Assembly: GCF_023055435.1 (NCBI RefSeq)
Contig: NW_025964001.1
Location: 40,052,001 to 40,116,000, forward strand
Length of the DNA stretch: 64,000 nt
From: Haliotis rufescens
Taxonomy: Eukaryota
Reading direction: 5' to 3'
The notes beneath the pieces were generated by a model, which saw only the letters and a list, made by a program, of their open reading frames with translations, ran no database searches and was not told the origin of the DNA. This document shows, in pieces, positions 1,235 through 58,872 of this stretch. A program made the position numbers and the translations under genes. How positions within the stretch are numbered: position 1 is the stretch's first letter; each line of letters starts with the position of its first letter.

Positions 1235-3687
1235 TCATGAAGCTTGCCACACATTCGTGATGTCATCTGACAGGTTTAGGCTGCCAGAGTGTTGGGATAC
1301 TGTCGTCAGTCAGTGTGAAAGTATACGAGTAAACGTAGTGGAAGCGCTATGACCGCTTTGTGATTTGTTTGTTTGTTGCTTAACGTCGCACTCATCAGTA
1401 TTCCGGCTATATGACGGCGATCTGTAAATAATCGAGTGTGAAACGAGACAGGAAAATGTTCCACAATACAATGTTAGCGATTAAACGATCGCAACTGCCA
1501 TACAACGACAGTTGGTAGTGCTATGATCGCTTCGTGAAACTGATCTGTATTTTCAGGCCCGCCAACACTTTATACCCGCAAACGTCTTCGTGTACCTTGG
1601 CGTACTCGTCTTTCAGAGACCTGTGAACTCCTTCAACGCATACATCGTAGTTAATCGCAGAACTATACAGCCACCCCTTGAATGTAGGATATTGATGTTT
1701 TAGACTGCAATCGAATTGGGGACCCTGTGCTGTCTTTCCAACTGTGGTCGTGAACACCAAAGCGACATCGTTCACTTGACATCAGCATCGTGAACACCAA
1801 ATGGCGGGGTTACTCTATCCAACCAGATTGGACCAGATGGTCAGGCTCTTTGATTGTGTGTTATTGTACCTCGACGACATAGGACGTTGTTCATGATATC
1901 AACCCTGGTTTGTCTGACCGACTCAAATATTAACAGGCCCCCGTGATATAGCTGGAATATTCCTGACTTTTAAAACAACAAACAAAGGAATAAGCCCTTA
2001 TTTCAGTCACAGAATGATTAAAATCTTTGGTCAATAAAAAACATGTCGGAGATATTCTAAATCAATATGTACAATTCCCCTCCTTCAACCCTTCTCCCTC
2101 GATATCCTCCTCCAACCCTCATCCCTCGATACCATCCATCAATCCCCTCCCTCAATCATCTTCAACCCCCGTGTATCCCCATCCAACACTGCCCGTCTAA
2201 ATCAGTGTGCCATCTTCCTGAGTGTGCCCAGTTTCTGCCCTGAAAGTCATTCCCCTCGATGCTCATAAATAAATTAGTCTCGTTTTCCCAATTAGCAAGT
2301 CAAACCCCCCTTATTTACGCAATGGGCCTGTCCTTGGTCAGTGCGTGTTTAGGCCGCGGTATCCATGGAGGTGCGTCAGTATTGTCCTCATGTCCGGTCA
2401 CTCGACCGCGGGCGCTGAATCACCATGGATGCTCCCCACAGCTGTATAAGGGAAAATAATCACATCTCGGACTTGACAAAGAGTATTGGCAAAAAAATCG
2501 CCATCACATCACGGATTTAATGAGTGCATTGGCGTGCTCGGACTCTTCTCTATATGGCCAGTAATCGATAGTACGCTGGACCAGGGGCCGGTACAGTCCC
2601 GCCGTGGCCACATGGACCTCCGCTGACGTAACTCCGTAATGGCGTAAGGCTGAATAGCGGTAATTGACAGTGGTCGCCCAGTAGTGCTTATTGATATTGT
2701 GTCTACAGGGCGAGATCGATGATCACATTATGACGGATTATCAACAGAGGCCACGTGTTAAATCTTTGTGTAATGACCCTTGAAGGCTTTGTCGACTCTG
2801 ACGGTAGGTTTACGCCGAAGCAGCTCAGTGTGTCGAATGAAAGGTACTATTCAGGTGACCAGTGGTCAGTCAGTAGGTGGTATAACGTGATATATTGTCC
2901 ATTGACGGCATACCACGCGTACAGATCCACGAGACGGGTCAACAGTGCCCGAAGGTCAATGATTGATTTTACTAATGGCTTACGTCATTGGAAGATAACG
3001 TCATATCGCTGTTAATCAGCAGAATGGCTGTGGAATTGATCAGAAGAACATTAGTTTACAGTCATTCATTCAGAGCTCTGGACACAACGTGTTTATGGAT
3101 TATGTATATATAAGGAACGTCAAGGCCAACACAGATATGTATAACTCCTCCACAGAACGAGGCCATATACGGTTAGACTTGCTCAAGGCGTGAATTATTA
3201 CTTTAAATAATAATTTCTAGATTATATAACAAGTTGACCCTATAAAAGACTGGCGTTCTTAGAGAGTACTGTCCGCTTATCTAGACTTGCCTATTGTAAG
3301 GATAAAATTACTAAACACCTATAGACTTCTCATTCAGTGCAGCTTTGGAGAAAGGCTAGGATACGGTGAAATAAAACGAGAGCACATATTGAGTAAGACT
3401 TTCAAATAATCGACAATTTATCGGACGATCTGGTTACAGAACAATTAGATCAACATTGTCGTAAATTACATCGCAAGTGTGTGTTTGTGGGACTCTTGTG
3501 ATCAGTCGTGTAGAAACTTAGGTTGCTTTGACCGACTGAAACAGAGATGTGTACATTAGTCAGACGTTCGTACCGGTCGAATATACACTTAACAATGTTA
3601 CATCTATATTGACACACAGAGATGACGTGTTTGAACAAAGGAGTTGTGGTAAACATGGTCTTGTGTCGGCGTTCGTCTGACGTCCCC

Positions 3688-21433: not shown

Positions 21434-22042
21434 TCAAGCAAAATACACCTGCACCAACATCAGAACCAGGTGAAACAGCCACATGGTCCCTAGTTCTCCC
21501 ATCCAACCATGCCGGATCCTCATCTCCGTATCCCTCTGGTACACCGAGGGCTCCATCCCACAGATGTAAGGCAGCATCTCCACCGTGCTGTGGTCGTGAT
21601 ACAGCTCCTCGAAAGCCACCAGACTCGCCCAGAAACTCCTATTGGGGTAAATTACCTCCCTTGCCTTATAGACCTTCCGATAAGCCTGCTTCAGGGTCAT
21701 GTGGTGGTGCTTCACGAGGTAGGCGATGCACACGGTGGCAGAGCGACTGACGCCAGCAATACAATGAACCGCAACCCTACCTCCTTGCCTCGCCACCTCA
21801 TCCACGTGGTCGACCAGAGACTCCAGGTGGGGCAGGATGTTCTCGGTGACAGAGTCTCTCAGGGACACACGTTTGATCATCAGGTCATCCTGTGGGTACT
21901 TCAGGTCCTGGAGCTCCGTGGCGACGTTCAGGATGTGGGTGATGCCATGCTCCTCCAGGGACCTTTCCTGGGTCACCCCGCCCACGCTGCTAAGATACAC
22001 GTGTTCGGTTATCTCCGCTACCTGGTTAGAGAAGTAACGCAT
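21434..22042 (-). CDS. Atypical dual-specificity phosphatase, DUSP14/18/21-like (202 aa), single coding exon
   Basis: VHCIAGVSRSA catalytic motif, LRDS acid loop, AYLVKH...IYPNRSFWASLVAFE, and STVEMLPYICGMEPSVY resembling the DUSP14/18 C-terminus; the ORF track starts at a TTG, first ATG is 22042 (acaATG), in-frame stop at 22124-22126; 5'UTR acceptor tctattgtag at 22303. Confidence 0.92.
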   Translation of the reverse strand: MRYFSNQVAEITEHVYLSSVGGVTQERSLEEHGITHILNVATELQDLKYPQDDLMIKRVSLRDSVTENILPHLESLVDHVDEVARQGGRVAVHCIAGVSRSATVCIAYLVKHHHMTLKQAYRKVYKAREVIYPNRSFWASLVAFEELYHDHSTVEMLPYICGMEPSVYQRDTEMRIRHGWMGELGTMWLFHLVLMLVQVYFA

Positions 22043-22466
22043 TGTGGTGGGCCTGAAGACAGTCTTAATATGGTCTGCGAGGGACGCCAGCGTCAATATT
22101 TTCAATAAATTTTCAAATGCTGATTAGGTGATCTTATGGTGAGGTTGGCTGTGTTCAGTGAAAATAAGTGGATACACTATCTGAATTGCTGGCACTGTTT
22201 GAGGATACCCCACGTAGGCTCATCCTTGATGTCTGTTTATGACTTTGGTCATCAAAACTGCCGTCTTTCGTTGCTTGCGTTGACAGTGATGGAACGTCAG
22301 TCCTACAATAGACAGATATAGGTCAATGTAGGGTACTTATTCCTAAGGAAGGAATACGTAACTGAACGTAACGAATGCATACAAAAATATTTCTACGATT
22401 AAACAGTTTCATAAAAATTCACATAGTATTATCAATACAGAAAGTCCACAGAACCCCCTGCAATTA

Positions 22467-22690
22467 CCGGTTAGAATTGGTCTTCAGCAACCCATGCTTG
22501 GCGTAAAAGACGACTTAAGGATCGGGTGGTCAGGCTCACTGACCGGGTTGATGCATGTCATCGTATCCCAATTGCGTGGATCGATGCTCATGATATCAAT
22601 CATTAGATTGCCTGGTCTAGACTAGATTATTTCCAGACCGCCGTCATATATCTGGAATACTGCTGAGTGCGCGTTAAACAACACACACAT
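22467..22690 (+). mobile_element. SINE-like family B copy (inverted partner copy at ~22915-23135)
   Basis: Matches the family B sequence at 24984. Confidence 0.8.
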
Positions 22691-23493
22691 TCTTGCGTCA
22701 TCCTGCCCCGACGGTGTTGGCGGTTGCTGATGTATTCAACCACTGGGTTGACCAAGACTCGATCATTTACGGCCGTCGAGATAGAGCTCGAAAATTTCCA
22801 AGTGGTGCGTAGACCAACTTCATAATTTTCAACAACTCAAATCACCAGGAACGATTCTGTGGCGTTGTTAGCAAGGAGCGGTGGGTAGACTAGCGGACAA
22901 AGCGTTTGCTCATCACTTGTTGTTTTTTTAAACGCCGCACTCACCAATATTCCACCTAAATGATCGCAATTGTAAATATCGAAACTGGGCAAGACAATCC
23001 AGTGATTGATATTGTGAACAACGGTCAACGTCGTCTGGGTACAATGACACTCAATCAGCCAAGTCACCGAGCCTGCCCACCCAATCCATTTGGTCGCCTC
23101 TTACGACAGCATAGGTTCAGCCGAGAACCATTCTATTATTTTCAATGTACCTCTCTAACATATGAAGTATATTTCTTATGTTCCCCGCTCGAATTGCCGA
23201 ACTGTTGGCTTCACATTTGCAACATACCAACCGCAATTTCATATCTTGAAATAGTGTCAGGCGTCATTCGTCACCACTCGCCCCTATCCGTAACCTGCAA
23301 GAAGGTTCGGCCGCCTATCGATGAAAGTTTTGTGCGAAAATACGACAAAGCATTCAGAATGCGGTCTGACTTCAAAGTACTTCGGTCAAAGAATCCTCCA
23401 GGAATATGTTTTGATTTTACATACGTCTAGTATCTAAACATATACCCACGTAATGTAACACCATCACCTACCAAATTACTAACATGATGATTT

Positions 23494-23757
23494 AGTTTGT
23501 TCATAGGCATGTCCCAGAAGGTGACGGATGACAAAGTAGACACAATTTATGGATAACAACTTCTGTATTTTACTGTAATGGCGACGTTTCGGTATGGTTT
23601 GGACTGGACGTGGGTCTAATCTGTGGTGTGTGTATCTTAGTGTGCAGTTTGTTGTCGGCCTGGGTCTGGGCAGTGCGTAGGTGTAAGGCTCTATACCGAA
23701 ACGTCGCCATTACTGTAAAATAAAGAAGGTTTTATCCATAAACTGTGTCTACTTTGA
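23494..23757 (-). mobile_element. Truncated Penelope-like insertion: 64-bp inverted arms plus ~38-nt tail
   Basis: Arms 23532-23595 / 23693-23756 contain ccGAAACGTC and AATAAAGAAG; tail similar to 27644-27682; gatgattt duplicated at 23486-23493 / 23758-23765. Confidence 0.8.
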
Positions 23758-24983: not shown

Positions 24984-25640
24984 GACCCGTGAAGATCGGG
25001 GTAGAATAGGTCTTCTGCAAACCATGCTTGCTGTAAAAGGCAACTGTGCTTGTCGTAACAGGATAGGGTGGTCAGGCCCGTTGACTTGGTTGATGCATGT
25101 CATCACATCCAAATTGCATGGATCGATGCTCATGACATCAGTCACTGGATTTCTGGTCCAGGCTCGATTATTTACAGACCGCCGTCATATAGCTGGAATA
25201 TTGCTGAGTGCAGCGTTAAAGAACAAACAAACAAAGCAATCACTGAATTGTCTGGTCCAGACTCGATTATTTGCAGACCTCCGTCATATAGCTGGAATAT
25301 TGCTGAGTGCAGCGTTAAACAAACAAACAAACAAAGCATACAATCACTGGATTGTCTGGTCCAGACTCGATTATTTGCAGACCGCCGTCATATAGCTGGA
25401 ATATTGCTGAGTGCAGCGTTAAACAAACAGAGCATACAATCACTGGATTGTCTGGTCCAGACTCGATTGTTTGTAGACCGCCGTCATATAGCTGGAATAT
25501 TGCTGAGTGCAGCGTTAAACAAACAAAGCATACACTCACTGGATTGTCTGGTCCAGACTCGATTATTTGCAGACCGCTGTCATATAGCTGGAATATTGCT
25601 GAGTGCAGCGTTAAACAAAAAAAACAACAAAAAAACAAGA
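24984..25640 (+). mobile_element. SINE-like family B full copy followed by four tandem ~100-bp copies of its 3' end
   Basis: Starts GACCCGTGAAGATC right after agcatacaatc; that flank sequence recurs between the tandem units. Confidence 0.9.
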
Positions 25641-26098: not shown

Positions 26099-26442
26099 GG
26101 TGAGGTGAGGTGAAATGGGGTTTAACATCGCGTCCAAGATTATTGCACTTATATAGTGACGTGTGTGTGTGGCTGCTTGTACTAGTCCGGACTGATGCCA
26201 ATTTATAAATAGTGCTAGCTCACTGAGATACCATGCCGCAGTTTAACATGAATACCCCACTCAGACACAGTATACTGACTCTGAGCCGACCAGTCCTTGT
26301 TTTAGCCCCTTAATGCCGAGCGCCAGACAGGGTAACAACAAGTACCATCTTTTAACGTCTTTTGGTATGACGCGGCCGGGGATCGAACCCAGGACCTTCC
26401 GCTCTCCGGGCGGACGCTAGACCACTAGACCACGCAGGCGGT
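26099..26442 (-). mobile_element. tRNA-derived Meta/MESC-domain SINE (family D)
   Basis: B box GGTTCGATCC; CATACCAAAAGACGTTAAAAGATGGTACTTG central domain; (TCACC)n tail; TSD tgacttgtacaa 26087-26098 / 26443-26454. Confidence 0.88.
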
Positions 26443-27244
26443 TGACTTGTACAAAATGGGTACCCAATAATAATCATAATAATTATTTTCAGGGGGGGGG
26501 GGGGGGGGGGGGGGGGTGGAGTTCTGAAAAAATAATCAATCCCCTGTAATACTGAATCAAATGTTATATATGGCTCGCATTGTAGTAACAGAAATAATGT
26601 GCCCTTTTTTGCGTCCAAGTGTACAAAGAATATACTTCCTTATATGGACACATGTATGGGAAAACAATGCTTGAGCTCCTTAACATTAATAAAATATATC
26701 TGATCTCCAACAAAAGGCCAAGATACCCCAGTCAAGCATGGTATTTCTGACTGCTGATACAAGAACCAAATACGACTCTCATCTCAAATACAGAAAAAAA
26801 CAAGGTTTAAATATTAAGTCACATTATCTCATACCACATGTCCCTGAATTTATATGAACCAAAAGGATTTAAAGGCCCTGACAGGAAATACCAATATTTG
26901 TCAACAGAGTATAATCAGGTTTGCTTTTTTATATAAATGTTACTCTTAAACTTATCAAGCATGAATGGAGTAGGCTTATATGTTATTCAAGCACATGATG
27001 TAAGTCACAAAATATTTGGAATCAGGAGAAAACAGAAAAATACATGGTGCTAAAACCACTGCAATAATATTTGCATCAGCAATATTGCAGCCACATACCG
27101 ATAAGAACAAGTTAACCATAACAAAATACCTGTTAACAAAGGACAGTAAAACAGTCGGGTAAATATCACAGTTTAGGATATAAACATTATTCTATCAGGA
27201 TAGACACAATTTTATGGACAACAACTTCTTTAATACTGTAAAAA

Positions 27245-27284
27245 GCGAAGTTTCGGTATAGATCCTTATACCGTTGTCAAGCAA
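27245..27284 (-). ncRNA. Minimal hammerhead-like motif, U3:A8 core variant
   Basis: Minus strand gc TTGACAA c ggtata aggatc tatacc GAAAC; the other arm has GAAACGTC (27588-27595). Confidence 0.6.
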
Positions 27285-27494
27285 GACTGAATGAGGGACA
27301 TAGTGCAGAATATATATAGCAAGTGGAGGATTAACAGTAGAGGCATAACAGTAGAGGATTAACAGTAACAACAAGGGCATACATGAGTGGGATAACATAG
27401 GTAGGTGTGACAACAAGGATGATGCTATCACAACACGATGGACAGAAAACACATAGCTAGAAGCCAATGGGGCATGAAGCCAATAAACAGGTGA

Positions 27495-27563
27495 TTATTG
27501 TTTGATGAGTTCATAGTAGGCGGATTGGATGAAATAGCCTTGATCTCTGTTGATTGTTGGGTT
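27495..27563 (-). pseudogene. C-terminal remnant of PLE GIY-YIG endonuclease ORF (NPTINRDQGYFIQSAYYELIKQ*)
   Basis: Translated by hand; the P-x-(L/I)-N-R-D-x-G motif is typical of the end of Penelope/Poseidon-type ORFs. Confidence 0.75.
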
Positions 27564-27918
27564 ATAACGGTATAAGGATCTATACCCGAAACGTCGCTTT
27601 TTACAGTATTAAAGAAGTTGTTATCCATAAAATTGTGTCTATCTTGTCATCCGCCAACTTCTAAGTAATGCCTATCAAACAAATTATTCTATCAGCCTAG
27701 TGGTTGCTTGGTTTCGTGTAATGCCGCACTCAGCAATATTCCAGCTATATGACATCGGTCTGTAAATAATCAAGTCTGGACCATACAATCCCGTGATTAA
27801 TATCATGTATGAATTAACAATTAGCTGAGACCCCAGAAACTGAAGTTAGACCACCTGACTGGGAATTATGGGGACAGATGGACTTAATTAGTGAAAGAGT
27901 ACATATCATTTCTCAAAA

Positions 27919-28881
27919 TCAGGATAAGTTTATACAAATTCTTTTGCAATGATGGTTCTTGAAATTGTGCTCGTTGGTGAAGAAGCCACCACAAGTACTG
28001 CATTTGGATATGTGGAACTGTTTGACGCACGATTGTTCCGTTCTCAACAGGAAGTTCTTTAGGGTTGGAGGCACATGTACTTGTGATAGATAATTCACTC
28101 TACACTCTAGGATACAGTCAACGGCTATCTGCATTAAGCTGCTCACGGATTTGACATAATCCAAGCTTTGAAAGTGATGAACGTTGAAATGTTCATTATA
28201 CCATGGGGTAACTTCTGAATACATATCAACACGATTGTGGCGTTTACTCAAAGCTGAGAAAATGGCATCCTTGCCCTCAGTGCAGACTGACATAGGTGGT
28301 GATACAAGATTACAGTTTCCAGTAACATCTAGTACTTGAAGATGTGAGAGTTTTAACAGACTTGTTGGTAGGTATGTAAGTGTGTTGTGTTTGAGGTATA
28401 GTTCTTCTAAAGTTGGTATATATCCCATAATAGGAGATATTTCCGACAAACAATTTGATGATAAATCACACACTTGGAGATGTTGTAGGTACACAAGTGT
28501 CCATGGAATTTCCCTCAGTTTATTCTCTTGAAGACGAAGTATCGTCAGGTTATGAAAGTTGCTGATGGTCAGGGGAATGTTTTCTACTGATGATTGCGAC
28601 AAGGTTATTTCTATTGCAGATAGGGGATTCCCGTGTTTTTCCAGTGCTTTTTTTAAATCTTTATCTTCTGACACATTGGAATTAACACTTTTCTGGCGAT
28701 GGTTGACAACTTCTACAAAAGTGATGTTGTTTATGAGTCTTGCTTTGTCTGGAACAACATTCGTCACATCCTGATCATTGATTTGCTGGGCTTCTGGAAC
28801 TTCATTGTCGTCGTCTTGTTCATCAGCGATCGGCAGAAATGGGAAAGTGCGTTTGAGACATTGTTTAGCACGTTTTAGCAT
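27919..28881 (-). CDS. Leucine-rich-repeat protein with C-terminal SOCS/BC-box-like motif and zinc-finger-like motif (320 aa), single coding exon
   Basis: About five 23-aa LRRs (LxxLxLxxNxLxxIP) and a cap (GNCNLVSPP); VSSLMQIAVDCIL...VPPTLKNFL; CSTCGGFFTNEHNFKNHHC. Confidence 0.88.
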   Translation of the reverse strand: MLKRAKQCLKRTFPFLPIADEQDDDNEVPEAQQINDQDVTNVVPDKARLINNITFVEVVNHRQKSVNSNVSEDKDLKKALEKHGNPLSAIEITLSQSSVENIPLTISNFHNLTILRLQENKLREIPWTLVYLQHLQVCDLSSNCLSEISPIMGYIPTLEELYLKHNTLTYLPTSLLKLSHLQVLDVTGNCNLVSPPMSVCTEGKDAIFSALSKRHNRVDMYSEVTPWYNEHFNVHHFQSLDYVKSVSSLMQIAVDCILECRVNYLSQVHVPPTLKNFLLRTEQSCVKQFHISKCSTCGGFFTNEHNFKNHHCKRICINLS

Positions 28882-52051: not shown

Positions 52052-52684
52052 TCTAGCTAGTGTGGGAAGGAAGGCCTAGACAGTTGTAGTTAGTGTGGGA
52101 AGGAAGACCTAGACTGTTCTAGTCAGTGTGGAAAGGAAGACCTAGACAGTTCTAGTCAGTGTGCCAAGGAAGACCTAGACTGTTCTAGTCAGTGTGTGAA
52201 GGAAGACCTAGACAGTTCTAGTCAGTGTGGGAAGGAAGGCCTAGACTGTTCTAGTCAGTGTGTGAAGGAAGACCTAGGCAGTTCTAGTCGGTGTGGGAAG
52301 GAAGACCTAGACAGTTCTAGTCAGTGTGGGAAGGAAGGCCTAGACTGTTCTAGTCAGTGTGAGAAGGAAGACCTAGACTGTTCTATTCGGTGTGGGAAGG
52401 AAGACCTAGACAGTTCTAGTCAGTGTGGGAAGGAAGGCCTAGACTGTTCTAGTTGGTGTGGGAAGGAAGACCTAGACAGTTCTAGTCAGTGTGCCAAGGA
52501 AGACCTAGACTGTTCTAGTCAGTGTGGAAAGGAAGACCTAGACTGTTCTAGTCAGTGTGAGAAGGAAGACCTAGACAGTTCTAGTCAGTGTGGGAAGGAA
52601 GACCTAGACTGTTCTAGTCAGTGTGGGAAGGAAGACCTAGACTGTTCTAGTCGGTGTGGGAAGGAAGACCTTCCAGAGAGCTAG
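52052..52684. repeat. 33-bp minisatellite ctagtcagtgtgggaaggaagacctagacWgtt (~19 copies)
   Basis: Direct reading; 11-aa periodic ORF. Confidence 0.95.
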
Positions 52685-55070: not shown

Positions 55071-58040
55071 TGTTATCTTATCTTATCTTCTCTCTTTGAC
55101 ATTGATATGTTCAGGTGTAAATTTGTCCGATGCTGATATTCTGTCACAAGGTGGACAGCATGTGATTCACAAGTTTCAAAACCTGTTTGCATCCATGCCT
55201 TAGAGATGGCTCATACGTATTGTAAACATCATGTACTAGATATCATGGAGGCTGTACACTTCAATCAGGGACCAATGATGATACACAATAACAGCTTCAT
55301 CTAATAATGTGTTATTTGTCACAGACAGTTTACTCTCAAATATCAGGGCATGCATGATTCATAATAATAAATTCAACTGAATCTTTCACATCTCCGCTGA
55401 ACACTCCTTTCAATCTTTCATATTTCAAACTTAACCCAATGTGAAAATTTCAAGCATTCATAATACCCGTAATATGAAACCTAACATTATTTAGATTTAT
55501 ACCTACAAGGTTATCAATTTACTATTGTAAGTTGATAAAACAGGTGTATTGATTCAAATGGTTTTCCCTCTTTACATAGATGGTGTTTGTGCAGACGTGA
55601 TACATCATTCGAAATCAGTGTTTGAATATGTTTCGTTTTAGGGTAAATGATTTTCAAATGAGTCAGAAGAAAAGGGATTAGTGGCTTTAATAAAAACAGT
55701 ATCATAAACCCTGTTTATGTAAGTCTGGTTGTATAGCCAGTGGCTGGTAGGGTTTCTCGCATGACTGAAGTTCATCACACTCATGGCAAGGAGATCGGAT
55801 ATGAATCATGTGCAGTTTTCCAAATTTCTGACTAAATGTCTGAACAATTATTTAACTTTTGGATAAGTGTCCTTATGGAGGTGTGAGACATAGGTCTGAC
55901 TATAATGGTGGTAGGGGTGGGGTCAGATTGGAGTATTGCCATCACACCCTGGTACTATGAAGGGTGGTGCCTGGTTCAGTCAGGCGTTCCAACTTTAATG
56001 CGGAGAAAACAGAACGCCGAGACTCTAGATTGTGTATAATCACACAGGAATTCTCTTGATGTGTCCTCATGAAGAAACCTTTGAACCCAATCTATAGGTC
56101 ACACATTTTTATCTCAAATTTTACAAATTTTTCATACCAAATAACTTTAGACAGTTGAAATAAAAAATAAAATACAGGTGTGTACCTCCAGTATTATATG
56201 TAAGGCCTTGCATTTTTTAGATTAGTTTATGGATCCGCAACCAAAAAGGTCTTTATATATGATAAAGATTGATAAATAATCCAAGGTTTTTTTATTTGAC
56301 TCAAACAGAATTTTTTCAATGATGAGTTATCATTACAAGTAAGATTTTAGATTTATAATATTTACAAGGATTATATATTTATCAACTACCGATTCAAATC
56401 AAACTATAAGATGATTAATAAAAATCGTGTACGATGCATTTTTTAGGGTGACCTTCCGATCAAAGTTTTCAGTATCAAAATCCATTACTACTAATAATAA
56501 AAAGGCTGTTCATTACTGGTCAGTGAGATGTTGGGGGTTGGTTTAGTGGAAAAAATAAATGTTAATAATGTTTAGTGTTTTGTCAGTTGCATGTGTAACT
56601 GGTCCCATCGTAGTATCCTAAGCAAGTTACACTGCAGCACATTACCCTTACAAGTTGAATTGGGTAGATTTGCTAAACCTATCACGCCTTTACAGGATAG
56701 AAATTATGTAATAATAACGCTGTAGAAGATGAGATACATTTTCTCATTAATTGTCCATTTTATTCTGACTTAAGATATGATTTATGGTTGAGAATTATAA
56801 AGTCTGATCCTATATTTGTTTCATTCTCTCCTGTGAACCAGACAGTGTTCTTAATGAATTGTAACACGTATATAAAACCTCTTGCCGCACTTATTTAAAA
56901 AATGTTTGCACGTAGGCAGCATTTCATTATTTAAAATTGTATTCCTTTTTTATTGTGTTTCGCAATCCTGTAAGTTATAATTCTATTATGTAAATAATGT
57001 TTTTCATTGTTCATTGTGTCTCATAGGCCTTTTATGGCCTGATTTTATGTATTTTATGCAAGTTTTTATGTCTAATGTGTACACATACAACATGTGACAC
57101 ATAAATAATATATTTTCTTCTCTTTTTTTTCTTCTTTTGTACCTGCATCGGAGAAGGCTTTATTCTGTTACGAAGAGAATTCCAGTGGCCACATATTACC
57201 AACAATGTATTTGACCAATTACTTATTGTAAAAAATTTGTATCAGATTTGTACTTGTGTCTTTTATTTTTCCAGGAAGTAGTTGATCAAAGTTGGAATGG
57301 TAGAGCAGATGAAAATAAACCTAAACCATTTTATTTTTTCGGTCAGTAAAATCGGTAAACCAGAAAATAAAAACTTGTGACCTTGTTTTCAGCTTCATTG
57401 TCTCTGCACAACCAGGACAAATAGAATGATACAGTGTTAAGTTGGGACAGCTGTGGTTCAATTCCCCGCCTTCTGCCTTTCAATAAAGAACACCAAGGAT
57501 TTGTAGGCATAGACGTGTGGCAATAACTCGCAACTAATGAACAATCTCTGTGACATTATGTGACCTACAAAGCAATTCCTTGTATGATACGCTGTGATAC
57601 AAATGGTATGAATTGAGTAATTCCACAGTATAAAAACCTCGGTCATAACTTTTGTTGAAATAAAATTTGAATTTAGGTGTGTGAACGATCCAATTGACAT
57701 GTACTCATATAACATTACTATTTGTTCATAGAGAATTCAAAATATGTTAATGTGTTTTTTCTTAAAATGTCTTGGGCCTTATATATAATTGTCTAGTAAG
57801 AGACGGATCAATAAAAATACCTGAAATTAGAAGACAAAAAATATGACTTTTGATAATTTTTATTTTTGCCAACTTTGTTTGACAATTTTGTGAAATAAGA
57901 AAATACAAGATGTTGCCACCACTTTTCATAAGAAATAGTTAATAAAATGTTAAGAAATAGTTAATAATATGTTTCAAAACCTTTATTTAAAAAAAACAAA
58001 ATAATAAGATATCTTCCGATATCTTGCCATGTTAAAACTT

Positions 58041-58313
58041 AACTAATGTTATATTTGGGATAACACTTTCTTAGTAAAGTACAGATTCTAGTACTTTTTT
58101 GGTTGAGTCCCGTCCGGGATTCGAACCCACACCTGCCAGGTGAGGCACCTAATCGCCAGCACACAAAGTCAGCGATCTAACCCACAGGTGTGGGTTCGAA
58201 TCCCGGACGGGACTCAACCAAAAAAGTACTAGAATCTGTACTTTACTAAGAAAGTGTTATCCCAAATATAACATTAGTTACATTTGACCACTTTCTAAAT
58301 GGCATTGTGTATT
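58041..58313. mobile_element. tRNA-headed element with 95-bp perfect inverted arms, 34-nt tail and 13-bp TSD (PLE-type architecture)
   Basis: Arms 58041-58135 / 58185-58279; B box GGTTCGAATCCC in both arms; TSD catgttaaaactt 58028-58040 / 58314-58326. Confidence 0.85.
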
Positions 58314-58395
58314 CATGTTAAAACTTGTTTGATTTTTTATTCATTAGTAGCAGTACTAACATGGAAGTTGAACATTATTATTTATTCTTTTTCGA

Positions 58396-58556
58396 GGGAG
58401 GTCGGGTAGCCTAGTGGTTAGAGCGTTCGCTTGTCACGCCGAAGACCCGGGTTCAATTCCCGTCATGGGTACAATGTGTGAAGCCCATTTCTGGTGTCCC
58501 CCGCCGTGATATTGCTGGAATATTGCTAAAAGCGGCGTAAAATGTCACTGGCTCAC
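58396..58556 (+). mobile_element. SINE family C, tRNA-Asp-like head
   Basis: TAGCCTAGTGG A box; cgcttGTCacgccgaagacccgGGTTCAATTCCC; TSD tattctttttcga 58383-58395 / 58557-58569. Confidence 0.9.
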
Positions 58557-58872
58557 TATTCTTTTTCGACCACCTACATTGAATTTTAGACCAATTTATT
58601 TGTGAAACAACTTATAAAAAATAAAAGGCCTAAAGTTGTTTCTAACGTTGCATCATGAACTGCACATTTTCCTTTAATTATTTTTTTTCATGATTAGAAT
58701 TGAATGAAAACATATGTTCCCATTTCCTGGGCCAAATTTGATTCATCACATCTGCTGATGGTTAGACATTTTAATATTATCAGTGTTTTGTATTAAGAAT
58801 GTGTGAGTTGAGTGTTTATCTTTTTTTTCAGAATTATTCAAACTATATAAATCAATCCTATGATCTGAGGTA

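Follow-up and report, generated by a model that had tools for sequence, protein, structure and literature searches.

An insertion at positions 58041-58313 of a 64,000-nucleotide stretch of the Haliotis rufescens genome (NCBI RefSeq assembly GCF_023055435.1, contig NW_025964001.1, positions 40,052,001 to 40,116,000 of the forward strand; hereafter the window) belongs to a non-coding retroelement family which we call T and which is both young and abundant, and this particular copy is inactive. The features described below indicate that T is probably a non-autonomous retroelement that depends on Penelope-like elements (PLEs) and carries a tRNA-type RNA polymerase III (Pol III) promoter, so that it resembles a short interspersed element (SINE) with a PLE in the place of the long interspersed element (LINE) that usually serves as partner. 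The insertion pattern of T is the signature published for GIY-YIG Penelope-like elements, as defined in PMC8557442, and is common to a PLE family of the same genome, PLE-R, with which T also agrees in the length of the target site duplication (TSD), approximately in tail length and in the collinear layout of a 3' module.

Structure of the insertion in the window

The geometry given in the original prediction, which had been made from the letters of the window, proved exact when checked by script. Positions 58041-58135 are the perfect reverse complement of 58185-58279, forming arms of 95 nt around a 49-nt spacer (58136-58184), a 34-nt tail is present on one side only (58280-58313, plus strand), and the 13-mer CATGTTAAAACTT occurs at 58028-58040 and again at 58314-58326 as a 13-bp TSD. 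The true TSD may be 10 and not 13 bp, perhaps comprising only the last 10 nt of the left copy, because the element 3' end in other copies reads ...TATTCAT. In a repeat search this arm pair was the only long inverted repeat inside 1 kb.

Mapping on the T unit resolved the insertion into two 5'-truncated T copies placed head to head, with the junction at 58184/58185. The longer copy lies on the minus strand (58041-58184, T128-274, without the tail; 98% identity to the reference L033:953-1259, minus strand) and the shorter, inverted and tailed copy lies on the plus strand (58185-58313, T179-T307). The 49-nt spacer is the portion of T that is present in the longer copy and absent from the shorter one, and the tail (T274-T307) is normal T sequence. 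Since the longer arm begins at T128, it has lost the A box and keeps the 3' two thirds of the tRNA-like module, and a scripted check placed a B box in each arm (58117-58127 on the minus strand in the longer, 58193-58203 on the plus strand in the shorter). The tRNA-like reading of the minus strand in the original prediction therefore captured a real module in truncated form, with its A box missing, and neither ARAGORN nor Rfam reported a tRNA within 58041-58313. An 8-bp stem of the minimum-free-energy fold bridges the tail-less terminus, its 5' arm AGAAAGTG (58249-58256, plus strand) pairing with the 3' arm CACTTTCT within the tail (58289-58296, plus strand), and this pairing also shows covariation with PLE-R. 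A chance palindrome is excluded for the structure in the window, given that genome-wide first-look matches to its sequence number at least 2,400-3,500 and that the TSDs of the family exceed the control. Matches of Rfam mir-1265 and similar models on T were rejected as candidates, being merely inverted copies.

Architecture of T insertions in the genome

The true unit was recognised from longer copies (L031, L032 and L033), and the 307-nt minus-strand sequence L033:953-1259, a complete unit bounded by a TSD, served as reference. Its first and last 13 nt are the same sequence (ATTGTGTATTCAT), for which reason tandem copies recur every 297-298 nt although the reference is 307 nt long. A search of the 1.33-Gb genome with T as query gave at least 3,518 first-look candidates, the best 40 of which were scored and are 93-100% identical to the reference. 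Such genome searches score the best 40-150 candidates, so that all counts given here are lower bounds and the sampled copies are skewed towards young and long ones.

For counts of architecture, 97 T matches were grouped by locus, about 40 loci containing a full-length unit. A same-strand partial or complete extra unit lies upstream in about 28 of these 40. The starts of the upstream partial units are spread over T19-T271 (T26, 59, 84, 88, 103, 116, 122, 146, 148, 158, 202-203, 227, 234, 239, 246-248 and 261-271) and each junction overlap is exactly 10 nt; these are partial tandems of the pseudo-long terminal repeat (pseudo-LTR) type. Arrays reach about 2.9 units (C90:772281-773125, C605:37367398-37368310 and C587:1720588-1721490). 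An inverted 5'-truncated copy is found on the 5' side in about 17 of the 40 loci, starting anywhere within T32-T263, and in the sampled copies, aligned with T as query, the long arms begin at T87-T146 and the short arms at T168-T221. An apparent single inversion junction common to all copies was discarded as an artefact of the palindromic (hairpin) query, the junctions being variable when T itself is the query.

The outer ends of these insertions follow a regular pattern. Where both ends could be read, one is tailed and stops at T304-307 (followed by CAT) and the other is tail-less and stops at T273-278, in 12 of 13 cases; tail-less ends of the family as a whole lie at T273-279. An inverted copy stops near T276 if its partner, the sense array, runs to T307, and the array itself stops at T277-278 if the tail is on the inverted copy. 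The two-armed sampled copies likewise have a tail at a single end. Internal tandem junctions always contain the tail, which continues directly into T14 onward (L031; L084, period 298), and the tail is therefore part of the unit and no addition. TSDs of 7-16 bp (median 12) were detected in 15 of 23 independent sampled T loci and in none of the 23 displaced-flank controls. No poly-A or microsatellite tail was found on T copies, and no PLE-like coding sequence was found beside T in 34 sampled T-centred loci (L001-L033 and L084). An ordinary tRNA-derived SINE located next to the insertion in the window served as negative control, and its 34 matches in the sampled DNA include no adjacent inverted pair.

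Variable-length inversions, a tail constant at one end only, TSDs and the lack of a microsatellite or poly-A tail thus recur at the level of the family and favour the PLE-type mobilisation that had been proposed for the insertion in the window. Arm lengths vary from copy to copy, unlike the fixed-length terminal inverted repeats of a miniature inverted-repeat transposable element (MITE).

Two further observations were made on individual insertions. The T insertion at L028:1486-1760 has 15-nt flanks that are mutually reverse complementary, shows no direct TSD and is tail-less at both ends (T276). The same T insertion with its flanks is repeated many times, within a contig or between contigs, among L023-L026 and L018 (G000:C124:8.31-8.42 Mb) and also L017 and L020-L022, and repeated insertions with shared flanks are segmental or tandem duplications, not independent insertions.

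A tRNA-type module and a putative Pol III promoter

The longer T copies contain consensus A and B boxes, in agreement with the tRNA-derived head that had been predicted. All seven full-length units sampled have at T121 the A box TGGCTGAGTGG, which agrees with the consensus TRGCNNAGTGG at every position, and six of the seven have the B box GGTTCGAATCC at T187; an ordered A-then-B pair would be expected by chance about 1e-6 times per random 300-mer of T composition. In the ARAGORN prediction T113-209 forms a cloverleaf of 97 nt, labelled Thr(tgt), in which the T arm and the acceptor stem are good and the variable arm is long. Judged from its sequence, this module is tRNA-derived and degenerate, and its isotype is indeterminable; the long variable arm of the predicted Leu-type tRNA was thus recovered and the Leu assignment was not.

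On the sense strand of the unit a single run of at least four T is conserved, directly upstream of the module at T103-107 (four to six T in 7/7 units, one of which has an extra T4). The 5' starts of older copies, a set fetched with the hairpin query and so free of selection for any start upstream of T128, cluster just past this run. In 10 of 12 independent older copies, read by eye, the long arm starts at T108, 109, 111, 114, 115, 117, 117, 120, 121 or 121, and the remaining two start at T87 and T127. The cluster formed by the ten starts follows the T-run by 1-6 nt and is located at the A box or ahead of it. Compared with a uniform spread over T1-128, the probability of such clustering is about 1e-8 (binomial calculated by hand). 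Many T copies are thus head-first, with the tRNA module leading, and a 5'-end cluster at this place fits the start of a type 2 Pol III promoter. Additional clusters of 5' ends lie at T1-T6, a secondary one, and at T246-248. L010, the one copy observed to lack the tRNA module, carries a deletion that recurs in no other genomic copy.

PLE families of the genome

The insertion at 27.6 kb of the window, which had been named in the original prediction as a PLE with a similar 3' end, is indeed a 5'-truncated PLE. The family alignment divides it into a 5'-truncated PLE-R copy on the minus strand (27199-27563; end of the open reading frame (ORF) and 3' untranslated region (UTR), without the tail) and an inverted 5'-truncated PLE-R 3' end on the plus strand (27566-27682) with a tail of about 36 nt, and the 13-bp TSD ATTATTCTATCAG flanks the element at 27186-27198 and 27683-27695. 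In four of 30 fetched loci (L058, L063, L067 and L077) the PLE-R 3' sequence is directly preceded, at a fixed distance, by an open frame with an RVT_1 domain (E = 3e-10), and the C-terminal block of this frame can be aligned to the GIY-YIG endonuclease encoded by a second PLE family (..VYK..C.CG..YVGET..R..EH..). With a reverse transcriptase and endonuclease (RT/EN) frame upstream, the 27.6-kb family thus represents the 3' portion of a PLE of autonomous type, and most copies of this PLE are truncated at the 5' end.

PLE-R copies start over positions 305-1216 of a 1,593-nt reference and end either at 1554-1558 (tail-less) or at 1590-1593 (tailed), with TSDs of 10-16 bp (median 13). One genomic copy has a 723-aa open frame (98% identity), a copy at G000:C223:23590000-23594500 looks intact, many sub-lineages at 47-65% amino acid identity are present in the genome, and the nearest public proteins are from H. 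cracherodii (98%) and H. rufescens (89%). A second PLE-type insertion in the window (23489-23756) comes from a related family, R2, which is about 83% identical to the PLE-R 3' end; it has 64-nt inverted arms and carries its tail on the left.

The genome contains two other PLE families, PLE-A and PLE-B, to which all 20 PF01541 loci belong. PLE-A, located in (TA)n, encodes RT and a Pfam GIY-YIG domain and has a canonical hammerhead. Identity between the two families is 41-47%, and PLE-B copies at such identity have intact 789-aa frames. The tails of these 20 loci are unrelated to the T tail, and none of them showed BLAST similarity to T or to the 27.6-kb element. In PLE-A (L035-L053, for example L041:1860-2070, oriented) the hammerhead CUGAUGA...GAAA lies about 100 nt from the end, the tail is about 35 nt long and most copies lie in (TA)n. 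The PLE-R 3' UTR contains a hammerhead-like motif, UUGACAA - 6-bp helix II - GAAAC (L067:1770-1800; window 27270-27300, minus strand), with the U3-A8 core covariation reported for schistosome PLEs; the descriptor needs a 1-nt offset to accommodate this candidate ribozyme.

For T, our own descriptor found no hammerhead on either strand of a T dimer, and the same descriptor finds the PLE-A (CUGAUGA...GAAA) and PLE-B (CUGAAGA...GAAA) hammerheads and the U3-A8 variant of PLE-R. A hammerhead-like reading of the antisense strand of T was rejected, since the CUGACAA found there has a C3-A8 mismatch and the adjoining GAAA has no helix II beside it. The negative result of the Rfam hammerhead models on T is uninformative, because Rfam also misses the PLE-A motif (E up to 1).

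A 3' module possibly common to T and PLE-R

The last 80 nt of T resemble the PLE-R 3' end (z 2.8-3.0, p about 0.008) and, less closely, the R2 3' end at 23.5 kb of the window (z 2-2.4, p = 0.02-0.04), whereas identical scoring against PLE-A and PLE-B gave p = 0.16-0.87. The alignment of T with PLE-R, first made by eye, was recovered by MAFFT without guidance. The two 3' ends are collinear, each with a motif, 23 nt to the tail-less terminus, 9-11 nt, an 8-nt motif and 19-20 nt, and in both the tail-less terminus often ends in ..CAT. The motifs, AGAAAGTG and CACTTTCT in T (T243-250 and T283-290) and AGAAGTTG and CAACTTCT in PLE-R, form the 8-bp stem in the minimum-free-energy folds of both 3' ends. 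The two stems differ at two positions, and at each of these the pairing is fully restored by a compensating change (A-U to G-C and G-C to U-A). In an eight-sequence alignment 87.5% of the cells are paired, against 39-56% with the partner slid, and the covariation score was reached by one of 500 column shuffles.

These comparisons provide moderate evidence that T and PLE-R share a 3' recognition module. Nothing detectable is common to T and PLE-R outside the last ~80 nt, and T is therefore a chimera and not, as had been supposed, a PLE in which a Pol III head replaced the part containing the ORF and the hammerhead. The 3' similarity does not single out PLE-R itself as the partner. PLE-R-like RT fragments are placed head to head with T at two loci, according to their coordinates (C583:14081906-14082535, 64 nt apart, and C157:4935827-4937830, about 1.4 kb apart). 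One such adjacency would be expected about 2e-3 times among the listed loci if the elements were evenly spread, by a rough estimate, and each pair could be a single chimeric insertion composed of a PLE arm and a T arm.

Proposed mechanism of T mobilisation

A more specific proposal can be put forward tentatively, namely that T is a ribozyme-free, Pol III-driven parasite of PLEs whose unit is permuted with respect to its transcript, the tail being the stretch between two alternative start sites of cDNA synthesis. An RNA spanning T1-T310 is no simple Pol III product because of its internal T5 run, so that a permuted-transcript model is needed. In source copies arranged as full or partial tandems, Pol III would start near T108 and be terminated by the T-run (T103-107) of the unit that follows; such a transcript would cover exactly one period, and the 297-nt DNA unit would therefore be a circular permutation of it. 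The same logic of a permuted unit has been described for the schistosome element Sm-alpha (PMC6765202) and for PLEs themselves. A complete template would come only from copies with an upstream promoter-bearing partial unit, and T1-107 may be a transduced 3' flank of an ancestral master copy.

In the same scheme the RT/EN of the PLE-R lineage would recognise the T 3' stem-loop module in trans, and cDNA synthesis would start at this module and not at the RNA 3' end, either where the module ends (T310) or within the loop enclosed by its stem (about T276). Taken jointly, the permuted transcript and the two starts of cDNA synthesis, at the end and in the loop of a 3' stem-loop conserved between T and PLE-R, form a claim that is perhaps true and that we hold with some reserve. 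Two staggered nicks of the GIY-YIG nuclease would each prime, giving two outward 3' ends that differ by the tail and are joined at variable 5' truncations. Insertions of more than one unit may arise by jumps between templates, end to end (from T108 onto the U-run of a further RNA), or by rolling-circle copying of a circularised T RNA.

Weighing of alternative explanations

Several observations weigh against a PLE-dependent element driven by Pol III. In full-length units the module is internal (T113-209 of 297), in part at odds with the predicted head at the 5' end that most older copies display, and about 110 nt precede it, including the T5 run, the expected Pol III stop. The D arm and the anticodon stem of the cloverleaf are poor, and the Rfam tRNA model found no match on T even at E up to 10. 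Several sense copies start at T1-T6, which the permuted-transcript model does not predict without extra assumptions, and one locus is seemingly tailed at both ends (C68:30991237-30991652). As to the 3' module, shuffle tests of the last 70-90 nt of T and PLE-R are marginal (z = 1.3-3.0, p 0.007-0.15, depending on scoring), and nhmmer profiles of 21 T ends and 16 PLE-R ends, run in both directions, gave no match at E below 1. The stem evidence comes from few, related sequences, and the fold energies are ordinary (z = -1.9 and -0.9). A PLE whose 3' end matches that of T at the identity usual between a SINE and its LINE was not found among the families compared, which cover a minority of the sub-lineages at 47-65% amino acid identity. 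The 3' alignment made by eye in the original prediction is thus weak as homology and stands as a collinear arrangement, specific to the PLE-R lineage, with a covarying stem.

Some of these points lead to a different explanation, in which T does depend on PLEs and its tRNA-like module is a passenger, a captured fragment of a tRNA or SINE, with templates of T1-T310 supplied by Pol II or by read-through and no part for Pol III. The internal position of the module, the T5 run inside any T1-T310 RNA, the copies beginning at T1-T6 and the unmatched Rfam model all agree with such a passenger, as does the lack of own promoters in animal retrozymes (PMC7761336) and in non-autonomous Chlamys elements (PMC8557442). 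We nevertheless consider it rather unlikely, since consensus A and B boxes are kept in six to seven of the seven full-length units, the sole conserved sense T-run lies 1-6 nt before the start cluster at T108-121 and the tRNA-less variant L010 did not spread. T might also be the 3' UTR of an unsampled autonomous PLE and its copies 5' truncations of that element, exactly what the 27.6-kb family proved to be, and our comparison covers few of the PLE sub-lineages of the genome; arrays that repeat the whole unit at a 297-298-nt period, a complete unit within a TSD (L033) and 34 loci in which T has no PLE-like coding sequence beside it make this explanation very improbable.

The remaining explanations dispense with PLEs altogether. 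A promoter of tRNA type, TSDs of 10-16 bp and truncated 5' ends occur among LINEs and SINEs as well, so that T could be imagined as an ordinary LINE-mobilised tRNA-SINE with inversions produced by twin priming. Twin priming inverts an upstream segment and does not duplicate the 3' end, whereas both arms of T insertions hold the same 3' region; T copies have no poly-A or microsatellite tail, partial tandems and a one-sided tail are foreign to LINEs, and the neighbouring conventional SINE has none of these features, which makes this origin very improbable. The copy in the window, taken alone, resembles a terminal-inverted-repeat hairpin with a TSD, as expected of a MITE or foldback DNA transposon. 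In the family, each copy has its own arm lengths and junction, an inverted arm is absent from many of the copies, the tail makes the ends asymmetric and tandem partial units exist, which leaves a DNA transposon exceedingly improbable. A PLE-dependent retroelement with a tRNA-type Pol III promoter accordingly remains the likely identity of T.

Other features of the window

The conventional tRNA-derived SINE used above as control lies at 58396-58556 (about 161 nt, within the region 58383-58569), matches the Rfam tRNA model with 31 bits at 58400-58471 and is flanked by the perfect 13-bp TSD TATTCTTTTTCGA; its 34 related matches are mostly head-complete and none has an inverted partner. At 52480-52564 and 26375-26433 ARAGORN called a tRNA-Pyl(cta) and Rfam gave a sub-threshold tRNA match (25 bits, minus strand), and additional SINE heads or pseudogenes of tRNAs are the probable explanation. 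An array of five to six tandem repeats of about 96-104 nt each occupies 25122-25626, with a related solo copy 2.5 kb upstream (22518-22690) and an inverted one just past the PLE-R insertion (27713-27798). Open frames on the minus strand at 21434-22105 and 27919-28881 encode a dual-specificity phosphatase domain (E = 9e-34) and leucine-rich repeats (LRR), respectively, and are probably host gene exons; the PLE-R insertion is located 237 nt from the LRR frame.

Relation to known elements and significance

SINEs are defined by their partnership with LINEs, and to our knowledge current repeat classifications contain no SINE class with a Penelope-like partner. We likewise know of no accepted mechanism for PLE integration. 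In the literature searched we found no SINE with a tRNA promoter and a PLE partner, and a survey of 2024 describes gastropod PLEs as lacking detailed characterisation (PMC11203168).

The closest resemblances of T are to elements of other lineages. Sm-alpha and Sj-alpha of Schistosoma are short, non-coding, high-copy elements with a tRNA-derived Pol III promoter (PMC2770079), and the Sm-alpha unit is permuted with respect to its transcript, so that a complete template needs a tandem of at least two units (PMC6765202). T is likewise short, non-coding and high-copy, with a tRNA-type promoter, a unit that is apparently permuted and a PLE-rich host genome. Sm-alpha differs in having an active hammerhead ribozyme that cuts multimers and in its flatworm, not mollusc, host, and the inversion-and-tail signature of PLEs was not found for Sm-alpha in the literature searched. 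Animal non-LTR retrozymes have been proposed to be non-autonomous derivatives of PLEs and contain type I hammerheads, with promoters absent (PMC7761336; bioRxiv 10.64898/2026.07.22.740005). Like T they are small, non-coding, tandem-prone and thought to use the RT/EN of PLEs, and T is their reverse in having no ribozyme yet a Pol III-type promoter. Because no hammerhead was found in the T dimer, T is not a retrozyme and is distinct from Sm-alpha.

Non-autonomous Chlamys elements (MRC1 of Chlamydomonas; PMC8557442) have pseudo-LTRs and 3' similarity to an autonomous PLE, as T does, but no tRNA or Pol III module has been reported for them, and they belong to another PLE clade, with an N-terminal EN, and to another kingdom. 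With classical tRNA-SINEs, including mollusc families (PMC4758252, PMC11481361), T shares A and B boxes, short length (below 700 bp), absence of coding capacity, TSDs and, probably, an RT supplied in trans, and many older T copies begin at the tRNA head as these SINEs do. T departs from them in its PLE-type scars, the lack of an A-rich or simple-repeat tail, the internal head of its full-length unit and the resemblance of its 3' end to that of a PLE.

T copies resemble hairpins or MITEs, can seed false miRNA-like calls and are easily misannotated in mollusc genomes. If T is what we propose, PLE machinery can be hijacked as LINE machinery is, in this case by a promoter-bearing, ribozyme-free element with thousands of young copies. 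Its small and abundant insertions, in which partial tandems and inversions of variable length accompany two outward 3' ends, separated by about 34 nt and the inner of them bridged by a stem, provide an unusually clean readout of PLE integration, and should the permuted-transcript reading be true, this 300-nt natural substrate would expose the mechanism by which PLEs integrate.

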